From assembly GCA_964035545.1 (NCBI GenBank), contig OZ037766.1, positions 9,228,722-9,292,721 of the forward strand: 64,000 bases of DNA, given 5' to 3'. The translations under genes and the position numbers were made by a program. A model generated the notes under the pieces. The model searched no databases. It had not been told where the DNA came from and was given only the letters and a program-made list of their open reading frames with translations. This stretch comes from Bugula neritina (taxonomy: Eukaryota; Animalia; Bryozoa). Below, piece by piece: positions 6,601 to 37,012 of this stretch; within the stretch, counting starts at the first letter, position 1, and each line of letters starts with the position of its first letter.

Positions 6601-8554
6601 ACTTACTCACTCTAACCTAGTTTCTACTTGTAGAATATAAATCTAATTGGGGGAAGGGGTTGACTTTTACAAGTTACAGAAAGCATGATACTGTTCAAGA
6701 TCAACTAGCTACACACTACCTCTGTATTGTGAATTTCTTAAATGTTAAATATGTGGCTGGTTTTACTCAAGATCGCACAGTGATAAACAATGGTAGCTCT
6801 TGACATATGAGACTAGTCAACTACACCAGTTTGTAGAAATTTCCAATCTCAAGGTTGCTGTTTGTTTACTTCAATCTGAAGAGGAAAATAGCCAACAAAA
6901 TCTTGATTATTAGGTAACACTAACTGAATTCCATTTTCATTCTGATTCCAATATGCTAATACTAATACTGAGGCCAGTAAAAATATGAAATTCTAAATGA
7001 ATTTCCAAATGTAGCCGGGCTAACTTAGTTTACACCAAATTACTAACTTCCTTTCTAGGCTAAAACTCAAGGAGATGTTGAAACATGAAACAGTGGAAAC
7101 CGATAGCCACAGCATATCCATAGCACTAACACTGCTGTATACATAAAAAGTTGATGGTAGAATGAAAACTGGAAACAAATTTACCAACACTAGATAAAAG
7201 TGGTCACAAGTGTTAGTCAACGTCTGATGTGATATATAATCTATTGCAGTTTGTGCAGCTGCAAATTCTGCAAGCAACTTCAGGAGCTAAACGCAGGATA
7301 ATTGCAATGTGTATGGTGATTCCACTCTTAATTGACTATTTACCAAAGGTATATGCAAGTCCCTGAAGAGTATATTACCACTAGCTAAGCTCAGTTACTT
7401 ACAAGGCACTACATAAAGGATGGTATAGACCCGAGTAGCCTATACAATCCACCCACTCTCTGCTGGGACCCCTAGTGCTTATATTTCACTTTCCATACAT
7501 GTATTAGCTGACAATATAATATTATTTCATGCCATCACAACGCATGCTTCAGATGGCATGCTTCTAATGGTTTGAGGTCCATTGTTAGTTATGTCCAATA
7601 TCGATCTGTGTGAGTATAAAGCAGGTACCAACTATCATCATGCATAGCAGGTTCTACTGTATACTTTAGTTACTCTATTGTCACGTCAGTATTAAAAATC
7701 AAGTTTGTTGAATAACACTCTGGTTGTCAGGAAAAGAAATATAATGATGAGAAAGTATTGAACTAATTCAAGACAGCTTATTCCTATTCCAATGCCCTTT
7801 TTAGCATGTGAAATCAAAAACTATTGTACTAAATAGAAAAGGATATATAACTGCATTTAAGAATTTTTTTGAGATTTATAAAAATATTATGTGCTTTCAG
7901 CTAAAAGTTAGCTGCTTAAGTACGGGAATGAATGAATCTAAAAGAAGTTTCGTAGAACCAATTGTAGTAGAAAAAGAGGACCATTGAAATTCAACAACCA
8001 ACTGACAACATTTTGAAAACTGAGAAGCCGACATCTTCGAAAACCGACAAATTTAATGGAATTGCAAGACAACTCACAGTGCCTTAAGCAAAGAATTTAA
8101 AAACACAATTCTCAATTTCTGCTGAAATATAATTTAAACTTAATGCTTGACTACAGACTGTAAGGAAACTGCTTACCCTAACAATTTCCAGCATCTCACT
8201 TCGAGAAATGAATCCATTACCATCCAGATCGTACATACTGAATGCCCACTTCAGTTTCTGCTCCAGCTGCCCCCTCGATGTCACACTGAGTGCACAAATG
8301 AACTCTCTGAAATCAATTGTCCCGTCACGATTTGCATCAAACGTGCGAAATACGTGCTCAGCAAACTTTGATGCATCACCATAAGGAAAGAAGTTCCCAT
8401 ATATTTTCTTAAATTCTTCAACAGTCAAGTGTCCTGATGGACAATCTTTAAGGAACCCCTTATACCACTCTGTGATTTCCTCCTCGTTAAAAGAGGTTTG
8501 ATCCTTGAGGTCGCTAATAACTTCTGGTCGCAACTTGCTTGTCCCTTTACCCAT
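3621..8554 (-). CDS. Neurocalcin/hippocalcin-like neuronal calcium sensor (192 aa; coding exons 8554-8177 and 3821-3621)
   Basis: Myristoylation-type start [23 protein letters not shown] motif, EF-hand loops [24 protein letters not shown] and [13 protein letters not shown]-terminal [11 protein letters not shown]. Phase-0 GT-AG intron 8176-3822 joins MLEIVR|AIYKMV. Closest to the NCALD/HPCAL1/Drosophila Nca type. Confidence 0.95.
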
Positions 8555-11239
8555 GTCTGTAACAATCCAATCTTGTAGCACTTATGAAGGATTTCCAAAG
8601 ATACTATAATTTAAAGATACAGCACATTAATAGACTTGGACTCGAGCTCAATTGCCACACTGCGAGTCAATATACAATAAATATATTTATAAATGTATAA
8701 TATTTATATTACAAAAGCATTGCTACCACTCATATTGATTTTACACCAACTTTGCTATATTTATAGAAAAATTTAGGATTTACAATAAGAGACTGCATGT
8801 ATATAAGTAGCAATGACCAGTCTTATCTGAATATATCAAAGATAGCAATTAATGTAATTCTCTATTCACCTACCCAACAAGTGCTGAATACTAAAGTGTA
8901 AATACAGCTACTATGTCAAATAAAGGGACGGTTTGGCCAATCACAACTATTGAGTTATTCATATAGAGCTTACGTCAACATAAAGCAACTAGCAATGAGG
9001 AGATGCATGAATAATTGCCGCTTTTTCTTCAGCATTTGTGTATATAATGCAGTGGATGCAAATAGCAAATAAATATTAATGGGATTACATATCATGAATA
9101 AACATGAGCTACAAGCAAACCTTATGCAAACCGCTGCTAAGTCATTTTTCATAAAAACGATAGGGTTACCATCTCGAACTTGCTGTAGCATGCAGCAGTA
9201 GTAGATTGAGAATGTAATCCAAAAACACAAATTGAATACATGAAACTAAATCCCAGCAGTTTTAATCCAAATTTATTATGGTATTTTGATAAAAACAGCT
9301 TCTGAATTAATTCCAAAGCGCATATATACAAATTTTAAAATAATTAAACTTTTTAGGGGTTCAACTGTGAACATTGAGAAAAGTTGAAAAATTAAAAAAT
9401 AAAAACATCGCATGTCTAATATAAGCCAAAATTTTAGCTACAACAAACTGTTTTTGGAAGTTGTAGCAGAAAATAACAGTACGCTACATGAATGGAGTTA
9501 GTTGTGAAGGCCTGCACGCTGAGTGTATTGATAAATATACATTACTGATTGTACTCAAAGGCCTTATAAAAGATGACATAAATTATTAGAAATTCCTGTA
9601 TATAGGAAATAACTTTTCCAGCATTCTCAAGCAGTAGCTGCATAAATGACTCACTAAATCATTAAATTTCCTACGGTGTTTGGCCAAATGAAAACGGCAC
9701 ATTTTAAACCTTTTTGCTACAAAAAAGTGGTAGCTTATTGTATCTAATAAGTATGAAGATGCACATGATACGATAGTTTTGCCATTTTATAACCTAAAAG
9801 AAATGGATTATTTTAAAAAAAATTGAGAACTTTTTTAACTAGTTTTTCAATCATTTTTTGAAAGGCCACTACGTGAAAACTTAAATAACATAAAACTGTA
9901 GTCAATATTTACCAGAATTATATAATTTAAACTTCGCAAATAAATGTAGAGCAAAGAAGTTGGGCCAAAGTTTAAATTGCTAAGTTTTTACAGCAATGAT
10001 AATATATTTAAATGGTGGAGTTGGAAAAGATGGAAGTCTTAAAACTGAGGGATCATAAAGTTACGTGGTTGCCATTGATTTTACAATAAAAAAGTAATCA
10101 ATCATCATATTGTAAAAGAAAATTGGAAAAGGCGTAGCATCAAGTCTACTAGCTAAGGAAATGACAAACCAAAGCTAATCAGGTAGATTGTTATAAAATT
10201 GCAAAAAAAGGAACAACTATCAACTGCTCTCAGCATAATCATTATAACAAACAGTACTTAAATCATTACTAAATTTAGTAAAATGATAAATAGATTCTAA
10301 AAAGGGTCAAGTCATTAATAGGTAAATTATAAACAATTCAACGCAGAAATAGCTTTGCTGTATTCAACTACAGCCAATAATTTTTTTGCATAATTCTTTT
10401 AACAAGTATAACCACGTGCAATATAAAAACTACTACACCACTATTTTCAAAATGAAACGTAATGAAATTTAGCAAGTGTTGCAGATGAACTACCATTCAG
10501 CTTCAGCTTTAAATAGTCATGGGTTATTGAGAACAGCTAACTGACAGCATATAATAACTGACGGGAAACTGTTTACAAACTGTAAGAATTTTCAATTGAT
10601 GACTAAACTAAGCACAAAAATTAGGCTTTCAACGTTAGGGCGTAGGTTCCTGTGCATACAATTATTGAATTTCCTTTAATGCAAATTATTAAACATTTAG
10701 CTATAAATTCACCAAATGAATATTTAATTGTAAGTCATTTGCCACTTTATTGAGGTGTGCTAAATAAGTTGAATAGCACAAAAATTTCGAGATATCTCAC
10801 TTTGGTACCATCAATTCACAAAGACAAATAAAGAAATTTTCTGTAATGACCAAATTTTTATTTTTGCCAGTCAGTGAACAGACAGGCCGATTTCAGTTTT
10901 AAAGCAGACAGAACAGTGTGAAAATAAGAAACCAGTTAGCAGTAGTTCTGCTCAACTATGTAATCCAACTGTACAGTCACTAAGAACTCAGAAATTCAAC
11001 ACTTTCTGATTTCCTCATAGATGAATATTTCGATGAGGATTCCAGAATAGTTTTGACCTAACCTTGTTACCTAAATTCCTATTTAGCTCTGATTAATTTA
11101 GTCACTCTAATATTGCATTTTACTTGAGATTTTGAAAACAACTTGGTAGTTGACTTTCCTACCTAACTCATGGTGACCTTGATTGCTGTGGTCTAGCATT
11201 TAGCTATAAAAAAAAACTTTTATAGTTTATAGTCCCTGT

Positions 11240-11970: not shown

Positions 11971-14950
11971 TTATACATCATTAGAACTGTTGGCTGTGAG
12001 CATAGAACAAAGTACGTTATCAGCTAAACAGCCATCTATGAACTCTTTCTTTGTAAGGACGCCATCTTTGTTTTTATCCATTTGAATAAAAATTCTCTCA
12101 GTTCTTTGCTCTGGTGTTTCCTGGGGTGCCTCTCTATCGCTGCTACTAACCATTCTGTATATTGCCTACAAAAAGTGCTTTAACTATACTCATTGCTGTA
12201 AATAGTTTACAATTATTTAGTTCAACTTCTATAAAATGTTCAAAGACCACGAGCATAAGAACTACGGTGATAGTTCAAACTAAAGTTGTTCATGTATTAG
12301 AAGATAACTTGTATCATACCTGATATTTGAAAACTGCTAAATGTGAATGTAAAGTAAATTTTGAAAAATTGAAAAACAGTTAATAACTTTTTAAACTTAA
12401 AGTAATAACTATTAGAATAACCATGTAAACTGTAAACCTTTGTCTGAGCACACTTATACAGTGGCAACACTGGATAGTCCATGTGCGACTTTTTGACAAC
12501 TCTACTCAGATACAGAGCTTTTATTAATAAATACACATCAATAGCACATCTTAAGCATCCAGCTTGGTAGTTAGTATAATTTAGGTGTGCATAACTGCGT
12601 TAGTAAAAAAAGTAAGTGTGTGATCTAGTTTTATCTGGTTGTCTACAACGTACATCAAAACACGATTAAAATATACCAACTACATATGTAAACCACATAT
12701 ATAAACTCATGAAGCTAATGTATTTTTTTAAAACAAAATTAACTCTTTATAATTAGTTACTAAACAATGAAAAATGAAGTTAAAATTACAATACAAGAAA
12801 ACTGGCCTATACAAAATATGGCATATACAGAATTTGTTCCACTTATCTAATGCCACTCAAAAGCTAGACATTTCTTTGCTGTTTCTTGTAAGGAAGTTGG
12901 TTTATTGCAGTTGTGAAACTTATACTATTTTAGTAGTTCAAATAGAAGCATAATAAATGGCATAACTTTGAGATAGTTAGATGGAAGGACAACTCCTATA
13001 TTGAAAGTGTTCATATCACCTTCTCTTGAAACTATGAAGCACAACTCCTAATACATAAACAACTGACCTTCTATTCCTTTTAAATTTCAGTATGATACAA
13101 AAGAACCCTTATTACGATACTCACACTAATAATTTGAACCATTTCAGCTTTCTCTATGGTCCCATTTCCATCAATGTCGTACATAGAGAAGGCCCAGTTG
13201 AGTTTGTCGGAAATTTTCCCAGAAGAAGTTATGTTTATAGCCAAAAGGAACTCCTTAAAATCTATAGTTCCACCATTGTCAGCATCAAATGTTCTAAATA
13301 CATGTTCACAAAATTCTTCAGCATTTCCACCAGGAAAAAACTCGGAGTATACTTCCAGAAACTTCTGTCTGCTCAGCTGGCCAGCTGGACAATCCCTCTA
13401 AAATTACAATGTTCTTACATTAAGTATTTGAACATCATATATACCATTAGCTTACTGAAAATAATGTTCTGACACACATACCACATATTTACATTACATC
13501 GTTTCAACATGATTGCAACTAGTTGATAATAATATAAGTATTCTCTCCAGCTCAAGTGGTGAAATACGGGCTGCGTGAAAAACATTCCCATAATCACTGG
13601 CTTCTACCTATCATGGTTGATTGTGTTCAGTGCATTTGTATCATAACTTTGGTCTTATTAGTTTCCTTCTCTTATTTGAAATGAATGTTAGAAAATTTGG
13701 CTACATTCAGGTCGCCTATCTAGTATCTACAACGGGTTGGGACTTTATTTTATTTATTTATCAAGTTAACCACTCACTACTCTACAACCATACTTTCTCT
13801 TGTTGTCAGTTTATTTTAATTTTGAACAGGTGTGTAATATATCAACACACCATCTCGGCTGCTAACAATTGAGAATGAATATGTTGATTATTTAACACAA
13901 ATACTGATAGCACCAGAAGAAATCAATGTCACTAACAAGCATGGCAAGTAGTCTTGTATTATTTTGTAACTTAGTAATGGCAACCTGCTTTTTCTACCTC
14001 TTAAGTGTATGAGCTACTCAGCCCAGATCAATTTGGCAGTTTTTTAATGAATTGACTGGCCTTGGATATAAGCTGAGCAGATGGATTTACCAAAATAGAA
14101 GTTTCACGTGTTTCCAGGTCCTGACTACAGGTGAAGTGAGATGAAGCATGAGGAGCTGGTGAGAGAAGTGCACATGGAGAGTGAAGGGGCGAACAAGTGC
14201 AGATTTCCTCTGAATTACAAGACTAGTTGAGCTACATCAAATAGCACTAAGGTTTAAGAGTAGTGATGGTGGCCAGCTGGTAGATGTGAAGAAGAATAAT
14301 TGGTATCAGAAAATATAATAGAAGTAAACTGGATGAAACCCTATTAGAGGATTAATTAATAGCAAGGTGCCTCTGTATTCAAACAGTTAGTTATTATAGC
14401 ACCGCTGAGCATCTATTTATCATTATACATATAGGTCATTATAAACAGGCTCAAAATAAAAGGTGAGTGAAGGCACCAATTAATGATTACAAATGTTGGC
14501 TGAAAACTAGGTTAAAATTGATTACGAGTAGTTCATCTACACCTTCATCAACATTAAGGATTGTTATGCATCATAAATTCTAGGGATAGCAACAGAAACG
14601 TAAAAACTGCAACAAATGTATATAATATTCTCTGATGCAGCATTTTTATATTATATACACCACAAAAAGAAACTTATATCATACAATAACATCAAAACTC
14701 ATTCATTGATTCATAGCCACACTGATCACAGAGTTGGTATATCATTTAGGACATTTTGTGCTGTTCAATACACACAAATAGCTCTTATAATGTTCGGTTT
14801 CTCAGTTAACTAAAAGGTAGATGAAGTCTACAGGCTACTCACCATAAAGCCTTTATACCATTGCTTGATTTGAGCTTTGCTGAAAGTAGTATTGGCTAAA
14901 AGAAAAGCTAGATCTTCCTTTGGAACATGTGATGAAGAACTTCCACCCAT
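11971..14950 (-). CDS. Neuronal calcium sensor 2-like protein (191 aa; exons 14950-14843, 13397-13125, 12165-11971)
   Basis: Three exons joined in phase 0 by GT-AG introns: MGGSSSSH...WYKGFM | [50 protein letters not shown]...[24 protein letters not shown] | AIYRMV...[17 protein letters not shown]. The middle exon was translated by hand (not in the ORF track). Confidence 0.92.
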
Positions 14951-17900
14951 AATACAGTAATCACCAAAATAAAACACTGCAGTGACCACTTCGCAGCTAT
15001 TCCTTCCTACAAGAAAATGAATGTAAACCAAAGCAAAATCTTGCAAACTGTGCACAGACTAGATACACAGTTAGAAGACACTCTAGATATTACATGATGT
15101 ACTATATTTCAACTCATGGATTTGCTTTACCAACACTTTCCTCCCATAGTTAGACCAGAGTCTGGTAGAAAAAGAACATGACATGATGATGAGAAAGTTT
15201 ATGACAATAATACTTATATTAGCCTATCTAGTAGATATCCATGTTTATGTAAACCTAAACCAACTATCTACTGCACTGAAGAAAATGAAAGAAGAACTGG
15301 TCAGAAGTGCACGACTGTGACATTTTCACCTTAAAAACCACTCTTAAAATTAACACCTATGAGGAGCTAAAACTATGGCATGCTGACAGAAGATGGTAGA
15401 GAACCATTGAAACATGTGACTATAACTGATCAAAGAATCACTAAAAATTTCGAAGACATAAATCAAATCAACTTCCTATATATAAGCAGAGTAAAACAAA
15501 TCCAATATCATCGGCAACAAGAAACCAACTCGAAGAAAGCTATAATAGCAGACAAGAACTCAAAGGTGCTTCATTTCACATACCTCCCTAGTGTTCTGTA
15601 CACTTACCTGCCTTTCCTTTAACTACTGGTACAGATTTCCTATACACAGCACAGCATATGCAGCTACTCACTAACAGTATTGACTAGATAATCAAATCAA
15701 TAAACTGAGGAGAGCTCCTACAACTTTATACTATCTAGTGCTAATCTTATTAGTAGCTTCTGCAATTAAAACTGTTGGATGCTGTATCCACTATCCGTCA
15801 AACAACTAAACAAATCTTTATAAAACTTTCAAGTAGCTTACTTCTTCAGATGATCTATTTGTAACTATTCCAGTAGTGAATAGCTATGAACTATATCGAT
15901 CAATGGACTACACTGCTATGTAGAATGTACCAATATAAATAGGCATAGAGAAGAGTTAAGTGATTGCCGAGGAGCAGATTCAAGAGTATAAGTAAAATAC
16001 AAGTAAAATATTGGCCTATCAAACTGCAGCAGCCTAATATCAAGCAAAAGGCTGGGCATAGCTTCACCAGTTAGAAGGGATAACTATTAGGTATGTTAAT
16101 GAACAAGTATTGGCAACACAAGATAAATCAAAATTTCAAGCAACAATGCAAAAGAAACAGATGACCTCTGAACCTCCCAACTGTGCAGCACTATTTGAAA
16201 CTGGCTACCCGTACCATCATTAAATTTTCTCTACAGACTTGCTGGAACTGCTACACATTTAGTAATTCAGCTGAATTCTTCTGTTAGGTTCTCTAAATTT
16301 AGTTAATTTTTATATCTATGCTATTAGGTATTATATTTCATTAAATCCATAATTACTATCAGCACTGGTTTCAATAAATTTTCATCAACAAGCATTATTG
16401 GGCTCATATCAACTTAGGTTTAGGATGCTGCTACACAAAACTTCAACTATCAAGAAAATTAAGGAAAACTGCATGTAAACTGCACAATATAATTAATTAT
16501 ATTAATTACTTGACCATTACAGATTTACAGGTGAATCACTTACAAGTAAAAGAGAAACTATCAAGATTGGCAAATTGATAAACACCAGTATGCAGTATGA
16601 AACTAATGCATAAGAGTTGATTGAGTGTTAAAACAAAATCTCAGCTTTATGCAGACAGATAATACTGTGTCGTGCTTCAGGGAATTATATATGGGTTTGA
16701 GAATAATAAAAAATGACATGCTGTTTGCTTTATGAACTCCACAGGGTAGGGAATAGAAGCTAGCTAGAGCTATATGATATGAAGGTGGGTTAGAGGCTAC
16801 TAGAGCCAACAACAGCTTGTTAAAACCTCTTGTACCATCCTTACATTATTATAACGCTTTAAGATTATAAGACTTTACCTATTGATTCTAGATACACCGT
16901 AAAAGTGTATTTTGCAATGAAGACAAGGGCAAAGAATGTATTCTAGAAATAACATTAAGCCGTAAAATGTGAATTTCATTTGTTATTTATTTAAAATATT
17001 ATAAGACTTTCTCAGACGCTAAATATATTTAACAAGTCTCATGCTTTTCACTTATGTAAAAAAGTGTTAGGAAGCCGAAAACCTTACTTACAATACACAG
17101 CTAGTTCAATAAGGTATATGTGTACATAATAATTATAATAAACGTAGCTTCTATTTTATAAACCTATGTGTAAACGTAGACTAAGAAATATCTACGCAAA
17201 TATGTGAAAATACTTTTACGTACTACTGTAAAGGAACTAATTTTCATCTGTATTGCTTTCTGAGAGCTCCATGAAAAAAATATGAAAACATTCCTATGGG
17301 TTATAAATAAGAATAAATTATTATGCAATGCTGATATCACATAACAAGACATGTGCCTGAAACGATGATTTCGTCACTACAGCCATATGCTGTTACACTA
17401 AAGAGCTGCCACTATTTGTGAATTTCAAAGGTAAAAATTACACGTGGCAACCTGGATAAAACATGGATAGAACTGCTTTTGATCTTAAAGATGTAGCCAA
17501 GAATCTCCATCTATTTTGATTGCTAGTTGCGTTAATGGAAAGTGCAGGCCTACTGCATATAGTTAGTAGAGTGTTTCCCTACCCTAGCATGCTGAACATC
17601 AATCGACAGTTTTCACCTCACATAACATAATGTTAGATAGGAGCATCCTTTAACTTCAGTTGTTTTTGCTAGTTGCAAATAATTAGTTTAATGAACTATA
17701 ACTGACTCTGCCAACAAGCTTGATGATTAACTTCCTGTCAATTGTAAAAGGCTACTTTGCTAGACTCACCAATAGATAAGAGCAGCAACAAAGAATTACC
17801 TCCAGCAAAAAGGCAACAATCTGAATTTTTAGATCAGCAAATTATCTACCAGGGACTAGAACGTATATTTCTGTTTATTCCTATAAATGCTTAGCCTAAT

Positions 17901-20900
17901 TTCTTTTTATAAATGTTATTTTTTAGCTTCTCTCCACAATATTTGGGTACAAAATGCTAACCAGCTCAAGTTTGAAACATCCATTATTAGGTAACTTTGT
18001 GACCCATGATTGAAGGATAGTTGTGAGTCTAATATTTTACTAGATATGTTTAGGGTATAACACAAAATTATTTTCACTTTTACTGCCAAAGAAAGAGGCA
18101 AAAATAGTTGTTTTCAAATGAATCCTTAACAGTAAATAATACTTGAACTGTGGTGACTAGCTTTGTCAAATTTTAGGTAAAAGTCAATTGCCAATCAGAC
18201 CAAATGACCGTGACAGAATGAAGAGCTACAAAAACCACCATTAGAACTTAAAATTGTAAGCAACTAAAAATTAGACGAAAAAATATATTCATGTTGCTGT
18301 AAAGGTATACTTGTATGCATATAAATGATTCAGGTAACAAGATTGAGCAGTCAAAGTTTCTCTATAAGCTTGGGCAGCTAATTTACTATGTGTCTCTTGG
18401 TTCAGATTGCAAAATTTCAAAAACTGAAACTGAGTGTTGGAATACCATACTTTTATAACCGGGAATACTATTAGGACCCTTACAGTTGTAGCAGGCAATT
18501 TTAAATCTTAAGAAAATACTGAGCTTGAATTGAATTAATCATGGTTACAACTTTTTGGCATACTAAAATTTCTACTAGAAACTGTGGCAAATTAGTCATA
18601 GTAGCCGTAACTACAATACAGTGAACAAGGTGAACTAAATCTTATATCTTATACATTAAAATTAATTTAACATACATACATCCCTGCTTGATATAAATAG
18701 GCAAAGTATTAATATAAATGGAAATAGTTTGCACAGCTTGCAATGCAGTATATATTACAGTAGATGAAACATTTAAAAGTGGTAATAGGAGACCAATTAA
18801 CCTCATTTGACTCTTTTGCATGTTTACAGACTTACAGCTCATGCTTACCAATTGAAATCAAATAGGATTGCACTACCAGAGAGAATATGTAAAGATCAAT
18901 CAGCTTATAAATATCCCATAGTTGTATGGCATTATATCAACAGCAAATGTTAGGTAATTAAATAACAAGAGAAAACAGAACATAGGCTGGCACCTTGTAT
19001 GTGATATTAGTGATTGAAGATATCAACTAGTAGCTAATATAATTAATTTGTGAGTAGAGTGATAACATATCCTAGAAATATATTGAATAGAATGGAGTTG
19101 GTCAGACTTTTTATAATATGAGCCTGTCATAGCAAATCACTCATCTAAACTTACATAACCGTTGGAAAATGGCAAAAACAGCTACATTTACTGGTTAAGT
19201 TGTCCTAAAACATGATACACATCAATTGTAAATGCAATTGAGCTAATTGTTAGTTGAATCACAATTCGAAATAAAAATAAAACCAGCGAGAAGTCTCAGC
19301 ACCATTTTCCAATGATTGCACAAAATTTCCACCCAACATTTAACATTACAACTAAGGATAGATATTGAAAATGTACAAAGAAGTGTGCAGACACTGCAGA
19401 CATCAGAATAGGACAAGACAACTCCAAATTATTTTATCTATGATTAGCCATACAAGCTATGTACAGCAGAACATGGTAAGGTGGACAATTCCAATTCATA
19501 TAAATATGTGCAAGTACAATAGAAGAGATACTTTAGCAATTATGATACAAATATACTTTCTCTAGTAAATTATCATGCACATCATTAGCCATTTCAGCAA
19601 TAAATTGTAGTAATTTTAAAAACATACCTCAAGACGAATGGTCAAGTCTTGAAAACATCCCAATGGTCTAAAATGAATGGAATTTGACTGAAAAGGGTGA
19701 ATATGAGGGAATAATTAGGCAATAATCAAATTGCATTATATAGCACTTGGCGTAGTGACTAAGTAATTAATAACTAATAACTGGATGTGGGAAATCACTC
19801 ACCTGAATTGATTTCTTTGACAGAGTTAAGGCAGTTCATAATCCTTATTATATGGTGTGATTATTATAAGCTGTGAGGAAGGAATCATTAAATTAAACTG
19901 ATTTGGGAGCAGCCGGATATTCAGATTATTAGTTGCAAAAGACAGCGATATATGTTATATAACTGAAAGCAAATGAGTGTGCTTTTGCGCTGCTAAAATA
20001 CCGATTTTTGGTTTTCAAACTCTGTCATCATTTTTAATATTACAGAAATTGAATAATAAGTTCTCATGGCTAAACTCTACAGTTTTGCAATAATAAACAG
20101 TAATGTTAATGGAACCTTTTTATTTTCAGCTGCATATACATTGTTTTTGAAAAAAGAAAACAACTCTAAATAATAGATAATGTATATTCTGGCAAGCAGC
20201 TTTATAGAAAGATAGGCACTGGAAACAAATTTTGTCTTTTTTTGTCGATGTAGATGACTAAAAATTTTTATAGCTTTAGTAGTATAGCCATTGTCAAAAT
20301 GTTCAGCTGGTTTCTTATAGTTTTGTAAACATAAGGCAGTGCCTTTGATATAAGCATTATAAAAATTGCTGAAACACCTTAAAAGAGAACCCACTTTATT
20401 AACAATTTATACACATTGAACAGCATATGCTAATTGTGGAGCCAACTAATTTATTGGGACAACTTAAATAGTTTCAGAAAAATTCATATTACTTTGAAAC
20501 AGGGGGCACTTCATGACACACAAAAAACAAATGGTTTGTGCAGAATTTTGACACTATGGCATTAGTGCAACATTTTCCCTACCAAAATGTTTATTGCTAA
20601 TGAACAGCCCCGCTACATTTTTATATCTGTTTTTACTTCAACTTGTTACAAAACTTAATACAATTTTGGGAGTAAAAATCAATGAAATCTGTTGTCTGTC
20701 GTTGCATATCAATTGTAAAACTTTAAGTTTTCAAGAAAATTCACAAATACTCAAAGGTAAAAAAAATTTATTTGTAAAATGCATTAAAATATTATAAAAC
20801 CATTGATCATGGAGGTTAGGGTACGAGATACTATTCTAATAAAAGAGAACTAACTTTTTGCTAAAAAAGAAAACTAGTCTTAACATTGTTAAATTGTTCA

Positions 20901-22019
20901 AATGCAAATTTGCAGATGAATATGGAAATGACAGCAAAACACGTACTTTTGATGACAGACCAGTTAACTCTGTGGCTGCATTTTAATGTATATACTGTGT
21001 CCATAAGATCCAACATGGTACAACATGGTACTTTGAATAAATTTCATTGAATAACCTTATTAACATGTTGAATAACATGCAACAGAGGGCTAAACTTCAG
21101 AAGTGGTTTCTTGATTTCTAATTGGAATTGAAGCATAAAAAGCATAACTTAAAGTATCACATTAAAACAGGAAAATGGGAGGTTCAAATTGGCAGACTAA
21201 ACAAAAAACTCTTAATGTTTTCATAGTAAGTCACAAGGAAAGCTATAAATTTTTCACCCAGATATGAACTGCCTAAATACTATTTGTTACTCACAGACAG
21301 CTATATATGAACATATATATAAGTCAAAAACTCAGAAAAGGCTTATTTGTTGGGATAAAAAGTTAATGACTTGATGCAGCATCACTTTTCCCCATTACAA
21401 GTATTCCAAGCTATAAACTTTAAAGCATTAATGCCAATTGATTGTTGCAAGCAAGTTCAATCAGTGCAAATACTACCCCCAATTAAAACTTTTTACAAAC
21501 TACAACAGTTTACAACCTTATGGTGCAGTCTTTATGATTAGCAAACATAAATTAGATCTGATAATTTCAGTTTAAAAATTACATCTTGGTGATCACTTAT
21601 AAAAAACTAGTAAATCATAGTAATAGACTGTTGTTTTCGTATGTTAGCAAAAACTCAAGCGATTATTTTGTATTTAATTGCAAAAGTAGAATATAACCAA
21701 ATCATATCAAGTATAATGTCTGATTAATAATACTAATTAATCAATTTGAAGGGTGGCCTAAAGCAAACACCTTGATGTACTGTTGAAAGAAAACAGCAAT
21801 AACAGCTGCTGTAGTAAAGCCACCATTTTTAATGACACTATCAGTTTTACTTTAGGCTCTATGAGTAACTTCTGGATCATGATTATTAATAAATTTGATA
21901 TTATAAAACTCTACAATTAGCATAGTATTATTATTTGTAATACTAAGCATTAGAAATAAGAGCCTGGGTGCAAGACTAAATCCAGGGGCAAGTAGTGGTG
22001 AGTAGAAAAATTTAATTTG

Positions 22020-23030
22020 AATAAAATATCAATAATAAAAATAACTAATATTATTAATAATATGTCATCACAGTTAAACTTAATACTTATAATATCAACA
22101 TGAATATGAAAATAAATATCAAAATTGCTATTAGTATTAGTATCAAAATAAATTTAACTACAGTTACTAATAGTAATACCAATATGATTAAGATTTAGAT
22201 TCTTAATATGATTTTCAATATCGTTATGAATATAATTCAAATTGAATAGCTAAACTATTTAGTATTCAACTTCTAACAACAATTAAAACACCGTTTAAGT
22301 TTAAAACCAAAATTACAATAATTCATTTTAACTTCAAGTAACCATCATTATCACGGCATCAGCATGGCATCACTTATTATATAGTGATTATCAACATCAA
22401 AATAAAAATGAATATCAATTTACCATAACCCTGTCCATTGTGAAAGACAAAGGACATTCACATTCAGTTAGACTTTGAGTTTCACATTGCTGTTGCATGA
22501 TGATGATTGCATTTGCTGTGATTGCAAAGCTCAAGCTGAGCCTGATGGTAACACTAACAGTAACAGTAAGTGCAATACTAACAGTAACACTGTCACCAAC
22601 AGTAACACTAACAGTAAGACTAAGTGCAACACTAGCGGCAAGTAAGTAACAAGATGACTAATCACCAAGACTAAGAGTAAGTTTAACAGTAACAGACAAC
22701 AGTAGGCGTAGCACAAGCTGAAGCTGCAAATTTAAACTATTGCATCATAGTCACTATGAGTATGACTATCGAATCATTATGATTATCATAATTCATACAA
22801 ATACAATTACAAATACATGCATTATGATTATGTTATTATAGTTTATAATTTATTAATAATTATTATTTCATCAAATTCAATTCACGTATTACTGTTAGTA
22901 TAAGTATTACTATTACTATTACTATTAGTATTACTATTAGTATTACTATAACTATTAGACTTATCACTTAGTATTAGATTTAGTATAAACTATAGTCAGA
23001 GGTTGAACTTTATGTCAACAAATATAAACT
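22020..23030. repeat. Degenerate 6-bp-periodic (drifting hexamer) tract
   Basis: Reads as successive hexamers differing by 1-2 nt, e.g. aatatc aacatg aatatg aaaata aatatc; aacact aacagt aacagt; tattac tattac tattag. Confidence 0.8.
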
Positions 23031-23357
23031 AACTGCCATTTTACGTAAATATCTACATCTATACCCACTATGACTTAAAGCTGATAACTTCGTTTTCAAC
23101 TTGAAGTTTTTAAGTATATCATAATATTATTGATATTCATATTGAATAATATTCATATTGCAGTGTTGCCATAAAACCGGATATGAAGCAAAATAGTAAA
23201 AATCGAATGTGTTTGGTGGAAACGCCGAAGAGTGGCATTTATAGCGATTACTTTTTCATGGGGAGAAAACCCTATAACCATTAATAAAATAATAAGACTT
23301 GTGAATTTGTAGTTGTCGCCACGGCATTGCGTTCGAGCATAATTCAGCAAGCTAGCA

Positions 23358-23376
23358 AGTTGCCCAGTGGGCAACT
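23358..23376. promoter_or_regulatory. RFX X-box-like palindrome AGTTGCCCA-G-TGGGCAACT
   Basis: Perfect 9-bp inverted repeat containing GTTGCC/GGCAAC half-sites, within a CpG-containing island. A second X-box-like GTTGCCATAAAAC lies at 23165-23177. The spacer is longer than in a canonical X-box. Confidence 0.4.
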
Positions 23377-23989
23377 CTTAATACCAGACATTATGTTGTT
23401 GCTGCATCAATGTACAGGCACCTGGGCATGGTATATTGGTAATATGGTATAAAAAGTTAATAAGCTAATGATGAATGATATAATGCAATACTAATAGGAA
23501 TAAAGAATATCTGCTCACACTAAATACACAGAGTTCAATTTTATCCATTTTAAGTGATACTCAACAGTGATATATTTAACTGTTTACCATTTCTAACCTA
23601 TCTATAAAATTATTTTGCAATAAAGGGAAACTTGTTAATTAGTTATAATCAAGAAACAAGTAGGATTTGGTAAAGGTGGAGCAAAAATTTAGAGACTATT
23701 GAGGCAAGTAAACTTCCAGTTAGATGCAATAATGGAGATTTTTGAAGACACATTTCCATTAAATTGAAATGGCATTTTGTTGAAAGGTTTTACACATATT
23801 AATATACCAACATTTGCAAATATGTAGAAAAATATTGATACAACTGTTAAGCAATGGCTGAAGAGTGCTTCAGATTTTTTGCATAGTGCATTGTAATATC
23901 TCCATTACTGCACCTAGTTCTACATTTAAATTTCATTGCAGTTTAAACAGTAAAACACTTAACTTCCTTCATCAAATTTAATGTGTGTA

Positions 23990-24170
23990 CAATCACGTGG
24001 CCCTTCATTCTGGCCCACTTCTGAACTTGGCCTTCATGCAAAGAAGTTGTCTACCCCTGCTCTATGGCGTTCAAATTACTTCGGTTTGAGAAATAGCTAC
24101 CCTGACAGTACGTAGAAGTGAAACTGAACGCGGCGCAGGCGGCAAACGGGACAGCCAAAATTGTTTATTT
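23990..24170 (+). promoter_or_regulatory. Probable POLDIP3 promoter region (CpG cluster, E-box CACGTG)
   Basis: CpG-rich stretch AACGCGGCGCAGGCGGCAAACGGG and TCACGTGG ~1 kb upstream of the POLDIP3 ATG in otherwise CpG-poor DNA. Confidence 0.45.
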
Positions 24171-24289
24171 GATGTTGATAAATTAAATTATTTAGTCTTA
24201 GACTTAAGTAATTATTAAATAATGTCTTTTAGCAGTTTCAAATTGGATAAAATCATGATGATGACTATTGAAGCAAGATTTACGTAAAA

Positions 24290-24685
24290 CTTAATTTACT
24301 TTTAGTTTTAGATTAAGTTTTACTTTTACTGTTTTACTTATACTTATAGTTATAGTTATACTTATAGTTAATGTTATACTTATACTCATACTGAGTTAAT
24401 CAGTTATAGTTATAGTTAATGTTATAGTTTTAGTTTATGAATTACAAATTACTATTAGTATTACTATTACTTAATAATAATTATCATAATTTAGATTATT
24501 ATAATCATAATTTAAATTGGAATCATTATTATAAAAGTTTAATAGTTATAGTTATAAACTTGAAGAAAAAGTGATAATCATAATCGTAATGTTGATGTAG
24601 CAGTCATATTAATACTAATGGCATATTAATATATGAATTTCATCATTGTGATTATAATTTTTAATAATAATATTAATATTAGAGT
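24290..24685. repeat. Degenerate 6-bp-periodic tract
   Basis: cttata cttata gttata gttata cttata gttaat gttata cttata ctcata ... actatt agtatt actatt. Confidence 0.8.
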
Positions 24686-25009
24686 CCTACCAGCTAGGTA
24701 ACAAGTCAAACCAAGTCAACTGAAGTCATGGAATCATTTGCTCAAGTCAACATTAACATATAATAGACTCATGACTCTATGAGTCAAATAATTTACATTT
24801 CCTTCTAGTCATACTCTCTTGTTGCAATAAGATTATCCTAAACAAATTCTAAAATAGCTACTGTATGCAGTTTAGTGATATGTATTAATAAGTGCTTGCA
24901 CTATAGACTCTGTATCAGTATGTGATATTTAGTAAACTTAAGCCTGTCATTATGTTTTATTGATTCTCTAATCTCATTTTTCTTATAATACTAGAACCTT
25001 TGCAGATCC

Positions 25010-28000
25010 ATGGAGGATGTTAGAAATAAATTGGTTCAGTCTCGAAGGATTAAAGGTGATGCAAGAAGTGTCATTCGCCAGCATGTTGTTGAGAAATTTG
25101 GTGATTTAAGGGCTAGGCTAAAGCCAAAAAATGTTGTCATACATGGCAGTCAAAAATATCTAGGAAATCAAAGGTAATCTACAATCATATTTTGCAAATA
25201 AATGATCTTGCTGCTTAGATGAAACATTGGCACATTTGCGCAAACCTGCAGCAAAGAGAAAAAATATGTCCATGACTTTATTGCTGAACTTTTTAATCAC
25301 TACGTCTGACCGCTGCTCCTTGCTAAGTAAATACAATAACGAAATTATTGATTTCCTGATAGCTGAGAAGAGAGAATTCATTTTTCAATTGGATATTTCT
25401 TATTGAGCTGGGGTAGTGATAATTATGCAGTGGCGTGTAGTAAATTGGCTGTTTGGAAATGAAAATTTATTTTAATGGTATTAATTGATATTATGATTAC
25501 GCAAGGGAATAATAGACTAGAATATGAAGTTAAAAGCGAAGACATTGTGTTTTATCATTTGAAGTTTTATTGCCATAATATTTTTGCTATCACTAGAAAT
25601 CTTGATATCATGTGAGTCTAATCTAGATGATGCTTAGCATAATGTAAATGTATATTTTTCAATGTAAGAAGATAAAAAATTAGGTTTGCTTTCCTATAAC
25701 GAAGTTTTTTTTAAAAATCTATAAGCAAAAGGCTTTCAATATTTTTTTTATCCAATTAAATGTTAACTTGCTGGGAAGGAACAAATGAGTTTTAATTTAA
25801 GCTGAAATTGTAACCCGTGGTAATTCAAATTAGTAAGAGTTTTGATTTTAATTAATGTGATGACAATAGAGTTGTTCATTTAAGATTGGTTTAAAAATTA
25901 GTTTAGTTATTTATTAAAGTTTATAAAAATGATATAAAAGTGATTCTGGACACAATTTAAATTGTTTTTCGTTGTATGCATCCAATTACACCTTGCAGTA
26001 GTCTTTTCACTATATGGCTCTAATCCTGGAAAGAGACATGTGTGTGTATAATATATATAGCTATGGCATAGCACATCTATGAATTTATTATTCAGTTTAA
26101 CCAAAACATTTCATTGCATTGTAACAATGATTGTTGTGCACTGGCTTTACTAATGGCTAACTGTGTAATCAATCTACTTCATTTATAAGTTTACAATATA
26201 TATATATGATGAGTTTAAAATTTTATTGTTTTACCTGAGAGTGTCCTTTTCTTCTTATTCCAAATTTTAAACCTATAATTAGTAGAGATTTAAATAAATA
26301 TTTTTTGTTTGCATTTAAAGCAGTTGCTTTTTGCATTTTCTTTCTCAGTGTAAATGATTGATTGTTTCTTTGTCCCGTAACATCATCACCTCAAGGTTTT
26401 GCCTCTGGTTTTAGATTAAATCAGGGTGGTTTTAATCGAAATGCAAAACCAAAGCTGGTTTATGCCGAGGATATAAGCAACAAAAAAGTACACAAGAAAG
26501 CTAAAAACCATCAGGTAAATTCCTAAACACTAGTTTGTCATTGTTCTGTTTTTTTTCAACTGCCAACTTTGCCTGATAAGCATGACAAATGTTGCTGCTG
26601 TAGTGTAAAGCTTCTGCTTATGGGTTTTTCATTACCTTTTGTCTTATATATAGAAAGCATCTAACGGAAGTGTTACTGTTACCGTCTCGAGACATAGAAA
26701 TGAGTTCATGGAAGATAATGTTCAACCTACTGGTATACCTGCTCACATGAGACGGCAGCCTTCGCCACCACCACCGCGCAATGTCAGCACTGCGAGCCCC
26801 TTGCCAAGTCGACCAACTAAATCAGTTTTCAATAGACAAAACTCTGAGGATTTCTTTCGTGGGCGACCTCACCAGGAGTTACCTGCTTCGGAATACCATG
26901 AAAGGTCTCTGACACCACCAATCAGAAGATCTCATAGCTATAAATTATCCCCTTTCAAGAGGCCCGCAGCATCCCCTATACCATCCGACTACAACTGGGC
27001 TCCACCTAAATCATTGAGATACAATGACTATCATGATAATGAAAGGCTTCAATCTGGGAATTGGAGCAGGAGACCAGAGTTGACCATGGCTGACTTAGAA
27101 GAAGAATATAGAGGACACAACTGGGAAAGGGAGCGATCACCGCTAGACAACAGATACAGACAATCTCCACCTACTATGTACTCAAGGTTAAAATATATTC
27201 TGTTTTGACAAGCACACACACAGTTTATAATTGTAAATTGTAAAGATGCTTTGGACTCTTTTGACGAGCACTACTAGTTTAGTTTCAGAAAAAAATAAGG
27301 TTGTTTTTTGCATATTATTATCATTTAGACTAAACAGTTGGTCAATAATGAACCTGATTTTTAAGCTAAGAAATTAAGAGCATCACATTTTACACTGTGA
27401 TTGATATACCTGAACTTCTATGAAATGTATTGATATGGCTATAGAGTTTTAGCACCGACTTATAAGCCTCCAACTGTATTCAACTGCACTACATTGCAGA
27501 ATGAATTACCCAGTTGATGAAAGGTATCCGTTCCTCTCAGGAAGTTACTCATCAACTCATCCCTCTAATCTACGGATGGATAGAATGGACAGGACTCGAA
27601 GCTCTGCGCCCAACTACAGACCAGACTTGAGGGAAGTGAGTTTGTACTCGTATATCACAGAGATTTAATGTGCCACCAAATAGTAATGCTGCGAAACCTA
27701 ATGGTAATATTATTAAGTTGTTGTATTTTTGTATCAACGGTCATGCTGGATATTTTATATTCCATGTTTCTGTAGGGAGCTACAGATACAGCTAGAAGGT
27801 ATAGACTTCCGTCTCCCGAAGACAAGCCTATGGGTAGCCTGGTAGGGGAACCACCCTCCTACACTGTCAGGGTAACCAACCTCTCTACAGAGGTTTCCGA
27901 AGAGGACGTTGTTGTATGTACCTTTTCATTCTTCTATTTTTTTTAGAAAGCAGTAACAATTTGAAAAAAGAAGTCTATTAAAACCTGTAGAAGTGAGATT

Positions 28001-33560: not shown

Positions 33561-34249
33561 ACCTATCATCAAAATACAAGAATGAAAACTGGGCACTGCA
33601 CCTACAGAATATTTTTCTACTTTGAAATACGTGGGGGTGTTTGGTTCAATATAAATATTTACAAGAATATTTTTATACATAAATTGGAAACAGTTGTAAA
33701 CTCTCACATTACTGTCAAAAATAAGGATTGCACTCCTGCTACAGCAATGTTACGGAGAACACGATTCAGTAAGAGCTACTCTTGTCCCCAATAAAAGTTC
33801 GGTACTCATTGATACCAATAAAACTTTACACCAAAGAAATCTAGTTTTTCTAAAGCGATTGTGGTTGGCTATTATTGAGGTGGATTAAAGGTATTGTTTA
33901 AGAAAATTTTCGGAGTACAATTTATAAATATTAATTCGTCTTTCATTACACATCAGTTCAAAAAGATCTATTGGAAAGATTAATTTATGTATTTGAAAAA
34001 ATTTGAGCCATGTAACAAAGAAAAGTTATTCCTACAGTTACTTGATTGGCCATAAAAATGTAACTCATTACTTTAGCTGGAATGAAATTTAACATTAGTT
34101 TAAATATTTACAACAAAACACATTCTCTAAATATTAAAAAACTTGAATAATAGCTTATAATGAATGTTTAGCATGAAACTGAAAGCCAGTCTCAGAAAAA
34201 CGAAGAGTCGCTACCTAAAGATCACATGACCCATGTTGACTTTAAGTCT

Positions 34250-35650
34250 TCAACAGTAACAATACTAATTGTACACCACCAATCCCAAATGTAACTATAG
34301 TATAATTATAACTAAACTAATGGTAATAGTTCAAAAATTACAATTATTACTACTATTTTTAGTAGTATTATTAATATTAGTATAAGTATAACTGTATAAC
34401 TATAAGTGATTACAGTTAGCCTAGGGCCACACGGTGCGTATTTTCGCATGCGAAAATTGAAATCACAAGTAGCAAAGGTGTCCACTGTGCGCGTTGAGAA
34501 AACCTTCGCACTTGTCGCTCAGCATTTTCAACACAAGTGCGAATCGTCCCTGTCGTCGTCACCTAATTGGCTGGTAGTTATTCAGCAAGCCCAATTTCTT
34601 TATTTTAGTGCTACATTCCAGTAAATTGCGTTTTATTGAAAGCGAGTGCGATTTAAAAATGAAAGCTTTATTTATCACGCATCACTGACCCTACAGTAGA
34701 CACCTTTGCTACTTGTGATTTCAATTTTCGCATGCGAAAATACGCACCGTGTGGCCCTAGGCTTACTGAGTTTGTGTAGGTGTTACTAATTCAATTATTA
34801 TTGTAAATTAAAATTTAATATTATAAAATTAAATATTAATATAAATATCATTGCAGTATATAAGCAGATTTGCTGATAGATTATTCATTAAAAATTACAA
34901 ATACATGTTCATGCTGGTAGTAATTGTAACCGTAAGTGAGTAACTCAGTACGAGTATCAGTACGGTTGTAAGATTTAGACTAAGAGTAAAAGAAGTGAAA
35001 TAGTAAAACTTTGAGAGAGTCAGCACATCACACTCATTCACATTGAGTGAATGTGATTGCATGTTGGCTGTTACTGTTAGACTTAGTGTTAAACTTTTGC
35101 TAACAATCACAATGACAATCACAATGACAGTCTTAAAGTCAATAGTAAAAAGCAATTCATATTTAATTTTATTGCATGACTGACAGTGATAGTGATACTA
35201 AATAACTAATAATTATAAGTAATAACTCTATAATAAGTAATAACTATAACTATAAGTATAACTCAGTTATATACTTATATTTGAATTTGGATGTTATAGT
35301 TAATATAATAATAATTGGCTTTTACTTTTAATATAAAACTAACAATAACTCTAAGTAATACTAATAATAATAAACTTAAAAGTAAAAGTAGTACTAACTA
35401 CAAATTGAAATTATATTAAATTTAATAATAATATTAATTATAATATAATTATAAAGTATAAACTATAAAGATATTATAATTATTATATCTTATTAATATT
35501 TATATTATTATATGATTATGATATTACATCATACATGTCATTATGATTATGATTATACTTATACCGGTATAACTTATAGTGTTAGTATACTTAATATTAT
35601 AAAATTAAATATAATCAACATCATAATGATATCAATAATAATAATAATGT
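34250..35650. repeat. Degenerate 6-bp-periodic tract (interrupted by the MITE)
   Basis: agtata agtata actgta ...; acaatc acaatg acaatc acaatg acagtc; actata actata agtata actcag; attatg attatg attata cttata. Confidence 0.8.
34419..34762. mobile_element. Non-autonomous DNA transposon (MITE), PIF/Harbinger-like, 344 bp
   Basis: 70-bp terminal inverted repeats (34419-34488 / 34693-34762, one mismatch) starting GCCTAGGGCCACACGG. Flanked by a TTA target-site duplication (34416-34418, 34763-34765). No coding capacity. Confidence 0.92.
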
Positions 35651-36111
35651 TTTTAAAACTAAAAGGCTTAACTCTAAACCAAATCCGATAGAATCAGAAC
35701 GATGGAGGTAAATTTTTTATTTACGATAAGAGCAACAATACCCGGTATCAAGCGTGCGAGTGCACTAGTTCGAATTTTAAACCTATTCACGAATGGGTGA
35801 GGCGGTTTTCTACTACAGCTCAGATAATAATTTCGTTAAACTTTCACGACTGGCTCAGAAGTCTTTGGTATCAAAGGCATGAACAAAGGGATATCTTTTT
35901 TTCTAAGCTGACTCGGCGTGACCTCGGCTGAATCAATGGAATAAAATATTTACGGTCATTACTCATTCAGTCATTGGCTATACTACTCATTGCAAATAAC
36001 ATTAATCGTAGCCATTGGTTAAAAAGAAATATACGCTTTAACAAAAGTTACCCCCCTGCATGTTTGTTACATATTGAATTTGATACATGCTTTTGTGGGT
36101 CTTACTGTTTA

Positions 36112-36750
36112 ACTGTACAATCACAATCACAATGATTTAATGAATGAATGATATTGATAATGAGTATGACACTGACAATTACTATTACTATTAGTATTAA
36201 TTACAATATCTTTTAGTTTCAACATGAACATCAACATGCTCATGCTGATGCTACAAGTACAACTACAAGTACTGAGTGTACTCACTCATCATGTTGTTGT
36301 ACTTGTAATACTACTAAGTCTAATAGTAATACTAATACTAATAGTAGTACTAGTTGCACTTGTAGTTGTACACGGCTAACTACACTAAGTCATATTCTTA
36401 CAGTTGCTCTTAAATTTACTCTTACTCTTAGAGTTGGTCTTGCAGTTATTGAGTTAAGCTTAAAGTTAATGTTATTCTTAGACTTATAGTTCATCATTAA
36501 TTCAAGCAAAAACGTGAGTTTATATGGTTATAATCATATCGATTATCTTTTTCACTTTTAGTTTAATTTTAGCTTCAAGAGATAATCATAATGATGATGG
36601 TATAATCATAATGATTGCATTGTTATTTAAACTTCAACTTTTTTATTTACTTCCCACTCTATTACTATTACTATTAGTATTACTTATTTACTATAATTAT
36701 AAGTATAACTATTATGATGAGCTTCAGCTTGAGTTATCAGTGTGACTATT
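36112..36750. repeat. Degenerate 6-bp-periodic tract
   Basis: acaatc acaatc acaatg; aacatg aacatc aacatg ctcatg ctgatg; aatagt aatact aatact aatagt agtact; actctt actctt agagtt. Confidence 0.8.
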
Positions 36751-37012
36751 TCGAATTTTTTGCAAATTTTAGTAACACCTTTGTCTTTTTTGTGCATGAC
36801 TTTTTGAACTTGTGTTTTATTTTAGGTTTTGTAGGTAAATGAAAACATTATTGTTTATAAGTTTCTAGTCAATTTTGTAGTTAATAAATTTGTTCTAAAT
36901 AGCACACGTGAGATGTACATAGGTAATGTAGTTTTATGGATGAATTTTTTAAATTTGAAACATTGTAATACTCAAAATTTAAAATAACGGTAAGTTATAT
37001 TTTATTTTCTAG

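Follow-up and report, generated by a model that had tools for sequence, protein, structure and literature searches.

What kind of sequence is the 6-bp-periodic DNA that flanks gene starts in the bryozoan Bugula neritina, and is it a signal or a by-product? We analysed a stretch of 64,000 nucleotides, referred to here as the window, from a 216-Mb assembly (GCA_964035545.1, contig OZ037766.1; G000:C2:9228722-9292721). An initial annotation had singled out two hexamer tracts in it, at 22020-23030 and 24290-24685, on either side of a CpG-containing island between NCS genes and POLDIP3. Two interpretations had been offered: a promoter-associated code analogous to the 10-bp PATCs (periodic An/Tn clusters) of Caenorhabditis elegans, or the footprint of short-lag slippage or template switching. 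The explanation that we favour, while holding the case for it and the case against it to be about evenly balanced, is that the tracts are a mutational by-product: unit slippage, together with a process tied to dyad symmetry, would act on dispensable transcribed DNA close to promoters.

Tracts were called in 200-bp sliding windows from the excess of lag-6 identity over lags 4, 5, 7, and 8, and 20 composition-matched local shuffles served as the control for this excess. Lag-6 identity was 0.508 across 22020-23030 and 0.605 across 24290-24685, as compared to 0.305 in the 1.25-kb island between them and 0.297 in the whole window; sequence outside the tracts gave 0.28-0.30. The signal was echoed at lags 12, 18, and 24 and lag 3 was mildly raised, while the match at lag 10 was 0.30 in the tracts versus 0.51-0.60 at lag 6. 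The sliding excess peaked at 0.30-0.35 in the tracts; shuffle maxima were 0.10-0.15 and never exceeded 0.15. The strong periodicity reported for the two tracts is therefore genuine, and it lies far above the composition-matched shuffles.

Six main tracts (21901-23100, 24201-24700, 34201-34500, 34801-35800, 36001-36800, and 40801-41200) rose above threshold and together make up 6.6% of the window. A weak patch at 1301-1500 and a match at 63301-63600 were also above threshold. The recurrence at 34.2-36.8 kb and 41.0 kb that had been described was confirmed, as these are the only other main non-coding tracts above threshold, and no tract was found in the long introns and 3' regions of the window, from which such DNA had been said to be essentially absent.

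Each tract is built of differing units. Tandem Repeats Finder resolved many short arrays with 64-88% matches, consistent with the earlier observation that the unit changes along the tract and that no single microsatellite consensus exists. On the other hand, the view that one 6-bp register is kept through a whole tract was rejected: the dominant phase of the C/G lattice switches every ~50-150 bp, with ~12 switches in the left tract, and a tract is therefore a mosaic of short arrays. Compared to a classical hexanucleotide microsatellite, the tracts share whole-unit length polymorphism but have neither one consensus unit with high copy identity nor neighbouring units that are identical at every position. 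We found no published description of 6-bp promoter-flank tracts in two bryozoan genome papers (PMC7576161 and PMC13326412), the B. neritina metagenome paper (PMC5041132), or full-text searches that covered 6-bp periodicity, hexanucleotide repeats of first introns, tandem repeats of bryozoans, and repeats in outrons.

Every main tract of the window adjoins a CpG cluster upstream of a gene start. At the first island, the left tract (21901-23100, minus strand) is a mosaic of AATATC, TATTAG, TAACAS, and TATTAS units (S stands for C or G); it is A-rich on the plus strand and hence T-rich when read outward from the island, and putative RNA contigs of run X10 span 22422-22554 inside it. Next to it lies the left CpG cluster (23150-23400; 4-5 CpG per 100 bp, without periodicity), a candidate core promoter for leftward transcription. 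The right cluster (24050-24200, plus strand; 6-8 CpG per 100 bp) may be the core promoter of POLDIP3 or its first non-coding exon. The right tract (24201-24700, plus strand) consists of TTTTAS, TTATAS, and TATTAS arrays with a T-rich sense strand and is situated between this cluster and the POLDIP3 splice acceptor. Each of these tracts begins 50-150 bp outside its CpG cluster. They do flank CpG DNA as had been claimed, but the supposed single 1.25-kb CpG island is in fact two clusters with ~650 bp of CpG-free DNA between them.

A similar arrangement was observed at a second locus. A left tract (34201-35800, minus strand), split by a miniature inverted-repeat transposable element (MITE) at 34419-34762, is followed by a CpG island (35700-36000; 3-7 CpG per 100 bp) and a right tract (36001-36800, plus strand; sliding excess 0.35) that ends ~210 bp before the acceptor abutting the start codon of a PLDc_2/PGS1-like gene. 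The gene on the other side of the island encodes a Porin_3 domain, and both identities come from Pfam matches on the annotation of an orthologous locus described below. Leaving aside the MITE, the layout is that of the first locus: minus-strand gene, tract, CpG island, tract, and plus-strand gene. The third case is a short single tract (40801-41200, plus strand) downstream of a CpG cluster at 40600-40800 and upstream of the next plus-strand gene; this cluster has a tract on one side only. The claim that tracts occur at these other gene 5' regions therefore holds, except that the CpG cluster at 34.4-34.8 kb is not a promoter but the MITE itself, inserted in the tract.

The MITE is 344 bp long, ends in 70-bp terminal inverted repeats, and has a TTA target duplication at a near-palindromic site, CAG-TTA-CTG. 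At least 40 full copies exist at 97-98% identity, among 854 first-look candidates. The element is absent from the orthologous locus, where the empty site shows a 3-bp overlap (the TTA target-site duplication). As its copies are so similar and the sister lineage lacks it, the element must have been active recently, and the 3-bp TWA duplication suggests that it is of the PIF/Harbinger type.

Are the tracts located by promoters or by start codons? The downstream NCS gene has a splice acceptor before its ATG, yet neither a tract nor a CpG cluster occurs for 13 kb upstream of it, which argues that tracts go with promoters and not with start codons. The left tract, ~7 kb from the nearest NCS start codon, would belong to the NCS genes. 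These two genes lie in tandem on the minus strand, the downstream one without a promoter-like CpG cluster or tract, and a shared transcription unit resolved by leader splicing would fit this arrangement. When the tracts are read outward from the promoter, T exceeds A in 12 of 13 (mean AT skew about -0.085, GC skew near 0), which is what the sense strand of RNA removed by splicing would be expected to show. The location of the tracts relative to gene starts in the window is not random, and their association with promoters, as first proposed, stands for the window and its ortholog, in which the main tracts lie in divergent 5' regions.

RNA evidence places the right tract in DNA whose transcript is discarded. 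The first coding exon of POLDIP3 (named from a member of protein cluster P0002 labelled POLDIP3, Bugula neritina) lies with its 3' splice acceptor at 25004-25171 on the plus strand, with the AG at 25004-25005 and the ATG at 25010. The match of RNA-like contigs from runs X7 and X10 begins at 25007, 3 nt before the ATG, and these contigs are spliced from 25171 to 26413 and from 26512 to 26652. Because the RNA contigs begin at the acceptor, a used acceptor separates the right tract from the start codon, and the tract lies in a 5' intron or an outron. In the X7 contig, 27 additional 5' letters precede the match and do not adjoin this exon, and POLDIP3 transcripts may be trans-spliced. A literature search for a spliced leader in Bryozoa returned only three papers, on chaetognaths.

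AG acceptors 0-4 nt before the ATG were observed at POLDIP3, the PGS1-like gene (ATG at 37013, in the arrangement ttttctag/ATG), the Porin_3 gene, the downstream NCS gene, and a gene in a further locus of the assembly (L003). Acceptor sites by start codons in the window lie at 8557 (NCS gene 1), 33563, 37011, and 25004; NCS gene 2 (14950-15010) has an AG acceptor 30-56 nt before its start codon.

How do the tracts evolve? Through the protein cluster of P0001 we reached orthologous copies in a public B. neritina assembly with an independent public annotation (GCA_010799875.2, VXIV02001672.1:29677-53176; here L027), two Joint Genome Institute metagenome contigs, and four Logan contigs. Protein look-ups with the exon-1 open reading frame (ORF) and a tract ORF, and an exact look-up of a window ORF, gave no matches. 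The orthologous copies are 99.1-99.9% identical to one another in long alignments and ~86-88% identical to the window in non-coding DNA, so L027 and its kin form a separate lineage. This lineage includes the public 2020 B. neritina assembly and the 2016 metagenome contigs. Between window positions 15000-38000 and L027 the non-coding difference is ~12%, and the POLDIP3 exon differs by 10% at the protein level. Judged from these sequences, two deeply split lineages are carried under the one species name Bugula neritina.

In L027, tracts were found at the same places as in the window (6251-8000, 9001-9750, 19351-20600, and 20801-21650), next to CpG clusters at 8001-8200 and 8801-9000 that correspond to the left and right clusters of the first island. 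By the public annotation, the main L027 tracts occupy the two divergent 5' regions; outside these lie an array within the first PGS1 intron and two weak or lineage-specific patches, at 3301-3500/4001-4400 and 16001-16200. The intron array (22301-22750), downstream of the PGS1-like start exon, is strong (excess 0.44), while the window shows a faint trace at ~37500-37700; it was therefore born or lost since the split.

The contents of the tracts, in contrast to their places, have been largely replaced. Part of the left tract still aligns (88% identity over 22026-22557, and about the same over 22058-22560), whereas the core arrays, the purest parts, at 22590-22890, 24324-24472, and 34979-35574 do not. 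Core lengths in the window and L027 are 338 vs 445 bp, 148 vs 299 bp, and 595 vs 527 bp, and whole-tract lengths are 1.2 vs 1.75 kb (left) and 0.5 vs 0.75 kb (right). In the right tract the first and last units are common to both lineages, while in the middle TTATAS has expanded in the window and TTTAAS/TTTTAS in L027. At confidently aligned sites, substitutions amounted to 79/865 (9.1%) in tracts and 966/11,686 (8.3%) in flanks, and no conserved motif beyond the lattice was found between the window and L027 tracts. Indels of 6 and 12 bp separate the two lineages. Near-identical haplotypes within the L027 lineage differ in the tracts mostly by whole units, with three 6-bp indels (TTTACT, ATGTTG, and TTTTAG, the last an insertion in the right tract of one haplotype), a few ordinary substitutions, and a single clean G>C at a lattice position of a TATTAS array; an RNA contig has a 6-bp ACATTC insertion relative to the window.

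The arrays thus gain and lose whole 6- or 12-bp units, cores are rebuilt, older blocks decay at the neutral rate, and the promoter-side location persists. This is the outcome that had been suggested as a check, position conserved and sequence not, obtained here for a lineage of the same named species at ~12% divergence. Hypermutation of the tracts was rejected, since divergence equals that of the flanks and apparent swaps are mostly unit shifts. The comparison points to unit turnover at a fixed place, with neither conservation nor hypermutation, and it does not support a conserved code. A promoter code resembling the 10-bp PATCs is disfavoured in particular by the period of 6, the flank-like rate of the alignable tract, the rebuilt cores, and the lack of any motif beyond the lattice.

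The lattice itself follows an internal rule. The A+T content of the tracts was 74% in one count and 75-88% in another, and roughly every sixth base is a C or G. Faithful copying of A and T at lag 6 stands at 1.49 and 1.52 times expectation and A<>T exchange at 0.7, while the values for C>G, G>C, C>C, and G>G are 2.23, 1.65, 1.79, and 1.81; C/G is therefore conserved only as a class. Most lattice C/G sits in the self-complementary triplets A-S-T and T-S-A: ACT/AGT hold 26% and TCA/TGA 19% of tract C/G (together 44.5%), against a background of 11% each (22%). Of 71 pairs of neighbouring units whose other five positions are identical, 47 have a different C/G, compared to 23% for an A/T position, and differences between neighbours in the A-N-T lattice comprise 92 complement swaps, 23 transitions, and 23 other transversions. 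Among five-letter contexts TA-S-TA is the most frequent, with TAC, GTA, TAG, and CTA each at 1.6-2.0 times expectation. On the sense strand, ACT and AGT are enriched 2.51- and 2.31-fold. Avoidance of start codons was considered and rejected, as ATG occurs at 1.10 times expectation.

The rule is not confined to this locus. Genome-wide, the four-point AST lattice occurs at 106,234 sites at lag 6 and at 15,121 at lag 7, where a rough estimate from base composition gives a few hundred by chance; the reversed TSA lattice has 23,104 sites. TATTAS repeated four times is found in 9,097 windows, of which 104 are all-C and 191 all-G, so that 3.2% are uniform instead of the 12.5% expected at random. Plain slippage would make uniform arrays the rule, and this deficit is therefore not predicted by neutral slippage. 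Uniform runs make up 35% of the general AST lattice, a figure inflated by (ACT)n/(AGT)n trinucleotide arrays among the listed matches, and the mixing of C and G is thus family-dependent. At two other loci, G000:C5:6243227-6243449 (L003:1561-1785) and G000:C2:19.914 Mb (L002:1440-1710), 19 TATTAS-array hexamers form a 114-bp higher-order unit that copies its C/G pattern faithfully (94% between neighbours).

The swapping of C and G depends on the spacer, the five bases between successive lattice points. In the pooled sequence sets (the window, L002 plus L003, and L027), the swap fraction between successive points was 63% (187/299) when both outer spacer pairs were complementary, 54% when one was, and 36% (31/87) when none was. 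None of 1000 permutations of C and G reached the overall swap difference. The effect had the same direction in three of three sets and was significant in two: palindromic and non-palindromic spacers gave 68% vs 26% in the window, 62% vs 22% in L002 plus L003, and 59% vs 51% in L027. As the swap excess rises with spacer palindromy, the surplus of C-G neighbours amounts to a surplus of short ACTA-N-TAGT-type palindromes. This dependence on the spacer is predicted if a process or factor responds to dyad symmetry, but not by an "any strong base" rule or by survival of interrupted arrays.

Folding gave a more limited result. Single strands of the tracts had folding z values of -0.5 to -12 relative to shuffles, lowest in TATTAS arrays, and model 120-nt TATTA-core arrays reached -21 kcal/mol with alternating S and ~0 when pure. 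Hairpin optimisation as a general rule was weakened, since z under C/G permutation was 0 to -2.4 per tract and the model effect occurs in the TATTA core only.

How might such DNA arise? Under the explanation we favour, fast-turnover microsatellite-like DNA would accumulate within the 0.4-1.5 kb next to a promoter, in DNA transcribed away from it, and its RNA would later be discarded, either with a 5' intron or with an outron removed when a leader is spliced on. Ordinary unit slippage would supply the copies, and a second process reading dyad symmetry would bias which arrays arise and grow. A candidate for the latter is fold-back or hairpin-templated repair or synthesis on DNA made single-stranded or under-wound by nearby initiation. 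The pattern would survive since the sequence is unconstrained, and no function would be required. Of the two interpretations first offered, the footprint of short-lag slippage or template switching fits better, given the whole-unit 6- and 12-bp indels and a C/G pattern tied to dyad symmetry, with the amendment that slippage by itself is not enough: the 6-bp slippage that we observed yields neighbours with the same letter (TTTTAG TTTTAG) and alone cannot give the swap excess.

That amendment is one of several points that weigh against a mutational by-product. The explanation presupposes a transcribed and open state of the tracts that is itself presumptive at this locus. The dyad effect is weak in L027, and as counts within arrays are not independent, the permutation result overstates its certainty. 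The TTATA, TAACA, and TTTTA cores gain no hairpin energy by mixing C and G, yet they mix; the real C/G order is just slightly more foldable than permuted orders, and control regions also lean negative in this permutation test. Finally, the persistence of tracts at the same places across ~12% divergence could reflect selection for a physical property.

This last point leads to an alternative that we consider unlikely but worth serious attention, namely that the tracts are selected promoter-flank elements defined by a physical property and not by exact sequence, such as an easily melted or cruciform-prone buffer of supercoiling, a setter or excluder of the first nucleosome, or a boundary or anti-silencing tract like the C. 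elegans PATCs. It would account for tracts that keep their places while their cores are rebuilt, for their presence by every CpG-cluster promoter of the window and not in gene bodies, for AT-rich DNA in which C and G are balanced and GC skew is near 0, and for uniform-S arrays that are 4-fold rarer than chance genome-wide, which neutral slippage does not predict. It is harder to reconcile with alignable tract DNA evolving at the flank rate, with tract length and unit content varying freely between lineages, and with a 344-bp MITE that sits inside one tract with no sign of repaired architecture; moreover, we know of no relation of a 6-bp period to nucleosome or helical geometry. Alternatively, the lattice could be an array of sites for a two-fold symmetric (dimeric) DNA-binding protein, with palindromes ACTA-N-TAGT and AGTA-N-TACT. 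A dimer would by symmetry be blind to C:G versus G:C at its dyad, and the rise of neighbour C/G complementarity with spacer palindromy, the prevalence of TA-S-TA, and the equal enrichment of ACT and AGT on the sense strand, a signal symmetric between strands, agree with this. However, many arrays in the same tracts (TTATAS, TAACAS, and TTTTAS) have no palindrome, substitution proceeds at the neutral rate, sites overlapping every 6 bp would probably be too tight for most dimers, and no candidate protein is known to us; we regard a dimer array as quite improbable. In its broadest form, the functional proposal would make the hexamer lattice a selected, genome-wide bryozoan device, either dyad-symmetric, easily unwound DNA or a symmetric-factor site array, that marks and insulates the first kilobase of transcription units and is kept by turnover and not by conservation of its sequence. 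We hold this to be distinctly speculative and rather unlikely.

Two further explanations seem to us very unlikely. Local point mutation could produce the C/G swaps, for instance cytosine deamination or base loss in promoter-proximal single-stranded DNA followed by a C-inserting bypass polymerase. Somatic hypermutation operates within ~2 kb of the transcription start site, and the length scale of up to ~1.5 kb from the promoter fits. C<>G changes constitute 10% of tract substitutions versus 5.6% outside, all in AST or TSA contexts, and the clean G>C noted above compares with no C<>G among the ~45 listed single-nucleotide polymorphisms outside tracts. On the other hand, most apparent swaps between lineages are one-unit register shifts, with only 3-4 anchored by unique flanks, the tracts show no rise in total divergence (9.1% vs 8.3%), the source-like DNA run had no recorded C<>G change across 5.9 kb, 5-7 right-tract haplotypes lack any substitution, and a point process would not depend on spacer palindromy. 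We give similarly little credence to the idea that the tracts are copies or remnants of one promoter-preferring mobile element or dispersed satellite. It is true that one TATTAS block (22886-22990) matches >100 places at 75-92% identity, a 17-base variant, TATAACTATTAGACTTA, which belongs to the 114-bp higher-order unit, occurs at 16 loci on 7 chromosomes while its reversed control occurs at 0, and the higher-order unit itself is present at two other loci. However, the matches never extend into flanks and are confined to the simple TATTAS part, so the tracts do not align to a single family or to one consensus with ends; an identity of 82-92% is roughly the level at which TATTAS arrays in general resemble one another, and the bulk of each tract is made up of other units that differ from place to place. 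What separates orthologous tracts is the local expansion of units and not the insertion of an element, and Rfam finds no known RNA family in the window. The shared variant gives a hint, at the level of sequence, that arrays by separate promoters may have exchanged DNA or have a common origin.

Other repeats of the window and the assembly were also noted. A tandem array of a 22-bp unit (58245-58613; 16.8 copies, 91% matches) is unrelated to the hexamer tracts. Among the small contigs C12-C300 (L006-L025; e.g. L007:1-105 and L016:5870-6010), 14 of 20 sampled begin with a 6-bp-periodic stretch. All seven that were read through contain (CCCCAA)n, and at least two have internal (GGGGTT)n; the GC content of the sampled contigs is mostly 26-34%, with two at ~43-45%. 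Their identity as alleles or haplotigs was rejected because the (CCCCAA)n caps resemble those of ciliate minichromosomes, and they appear to derive from an epibiont contaminating the assembly.

If the tracts are mutational, they constitute an unusually clean natural record of promoter-proximal DNA instability, with a 6-bp step and a dyad rule, at thousands of gene starts, and could show how DNA behaves near initiating polymerases in an animal germline. If they are functional, they represent a new kind of promoter-flank signal, and a genome-wide device would add a class of cis-element alongside CpG islands and PATCs. The tracts also provide a promoter marker from sequence alone in a phylum for which functional genomics is nearly lacking; they account for breaks in the assembly, and careful masking is needed in annotation.

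Among known systems, promoter-proximal microsatellites and "cryptic simplicity" are similar to the tracts in having short-period arrays near gene starts, whole-unit changes between individuals, fast evolution, and no conserved sequence. In contrast to these, the tracts lack a single consensus unit, thousands of loci share one fixed period of 6 with its 3-bp sub-lattice, each unit has one C/G in a self-complementary triplet, and uniform-letter arrays, which slippage should make the norm, are 4-fold rarer than chance. The C. elegans PATCs, An/Tn clusters with a 10-bp period that occur in introns of genes expressed in the germline, are likewise AT-rich periodic non-coding DNA in transcribed, spliced-out parts of genes genome-wide. 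The tracts differ from them in a period of 6 and not 10 (lag-10 match 0.30 vs 0.51 at lag 6), in their restriction to the first 0.4-1.5 kb by the promoter instead of a spread through introns, and in being made of tandem units and not of phased A/T runs.

The tracts also recall the outrons of spliced-leader genes in nematodes, tunicates, and flatworms, given the AG acceptor 0-4 nt before the ATG in five genes and a POLDIP3 RNA contig that begins at the acceptor with a short, non-adjacent 5' piece; to our knowledge, outrons elsewhere have not been reported to be filled with periodic repeats as here. A last comparison concerns how the tracts may work and not what they belong to. As in hairpin-forming CNG triplet repeats, A-N-T and T-N-A self-pair around a central mismatch, although the stems of the tracts are A:T-based and weak and only the TATTA-core family gains real folding energy. 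As in quasi-palindrome templated mutation, the swaps yield the complementary central letter, and their excess follows local dyad symmetry.

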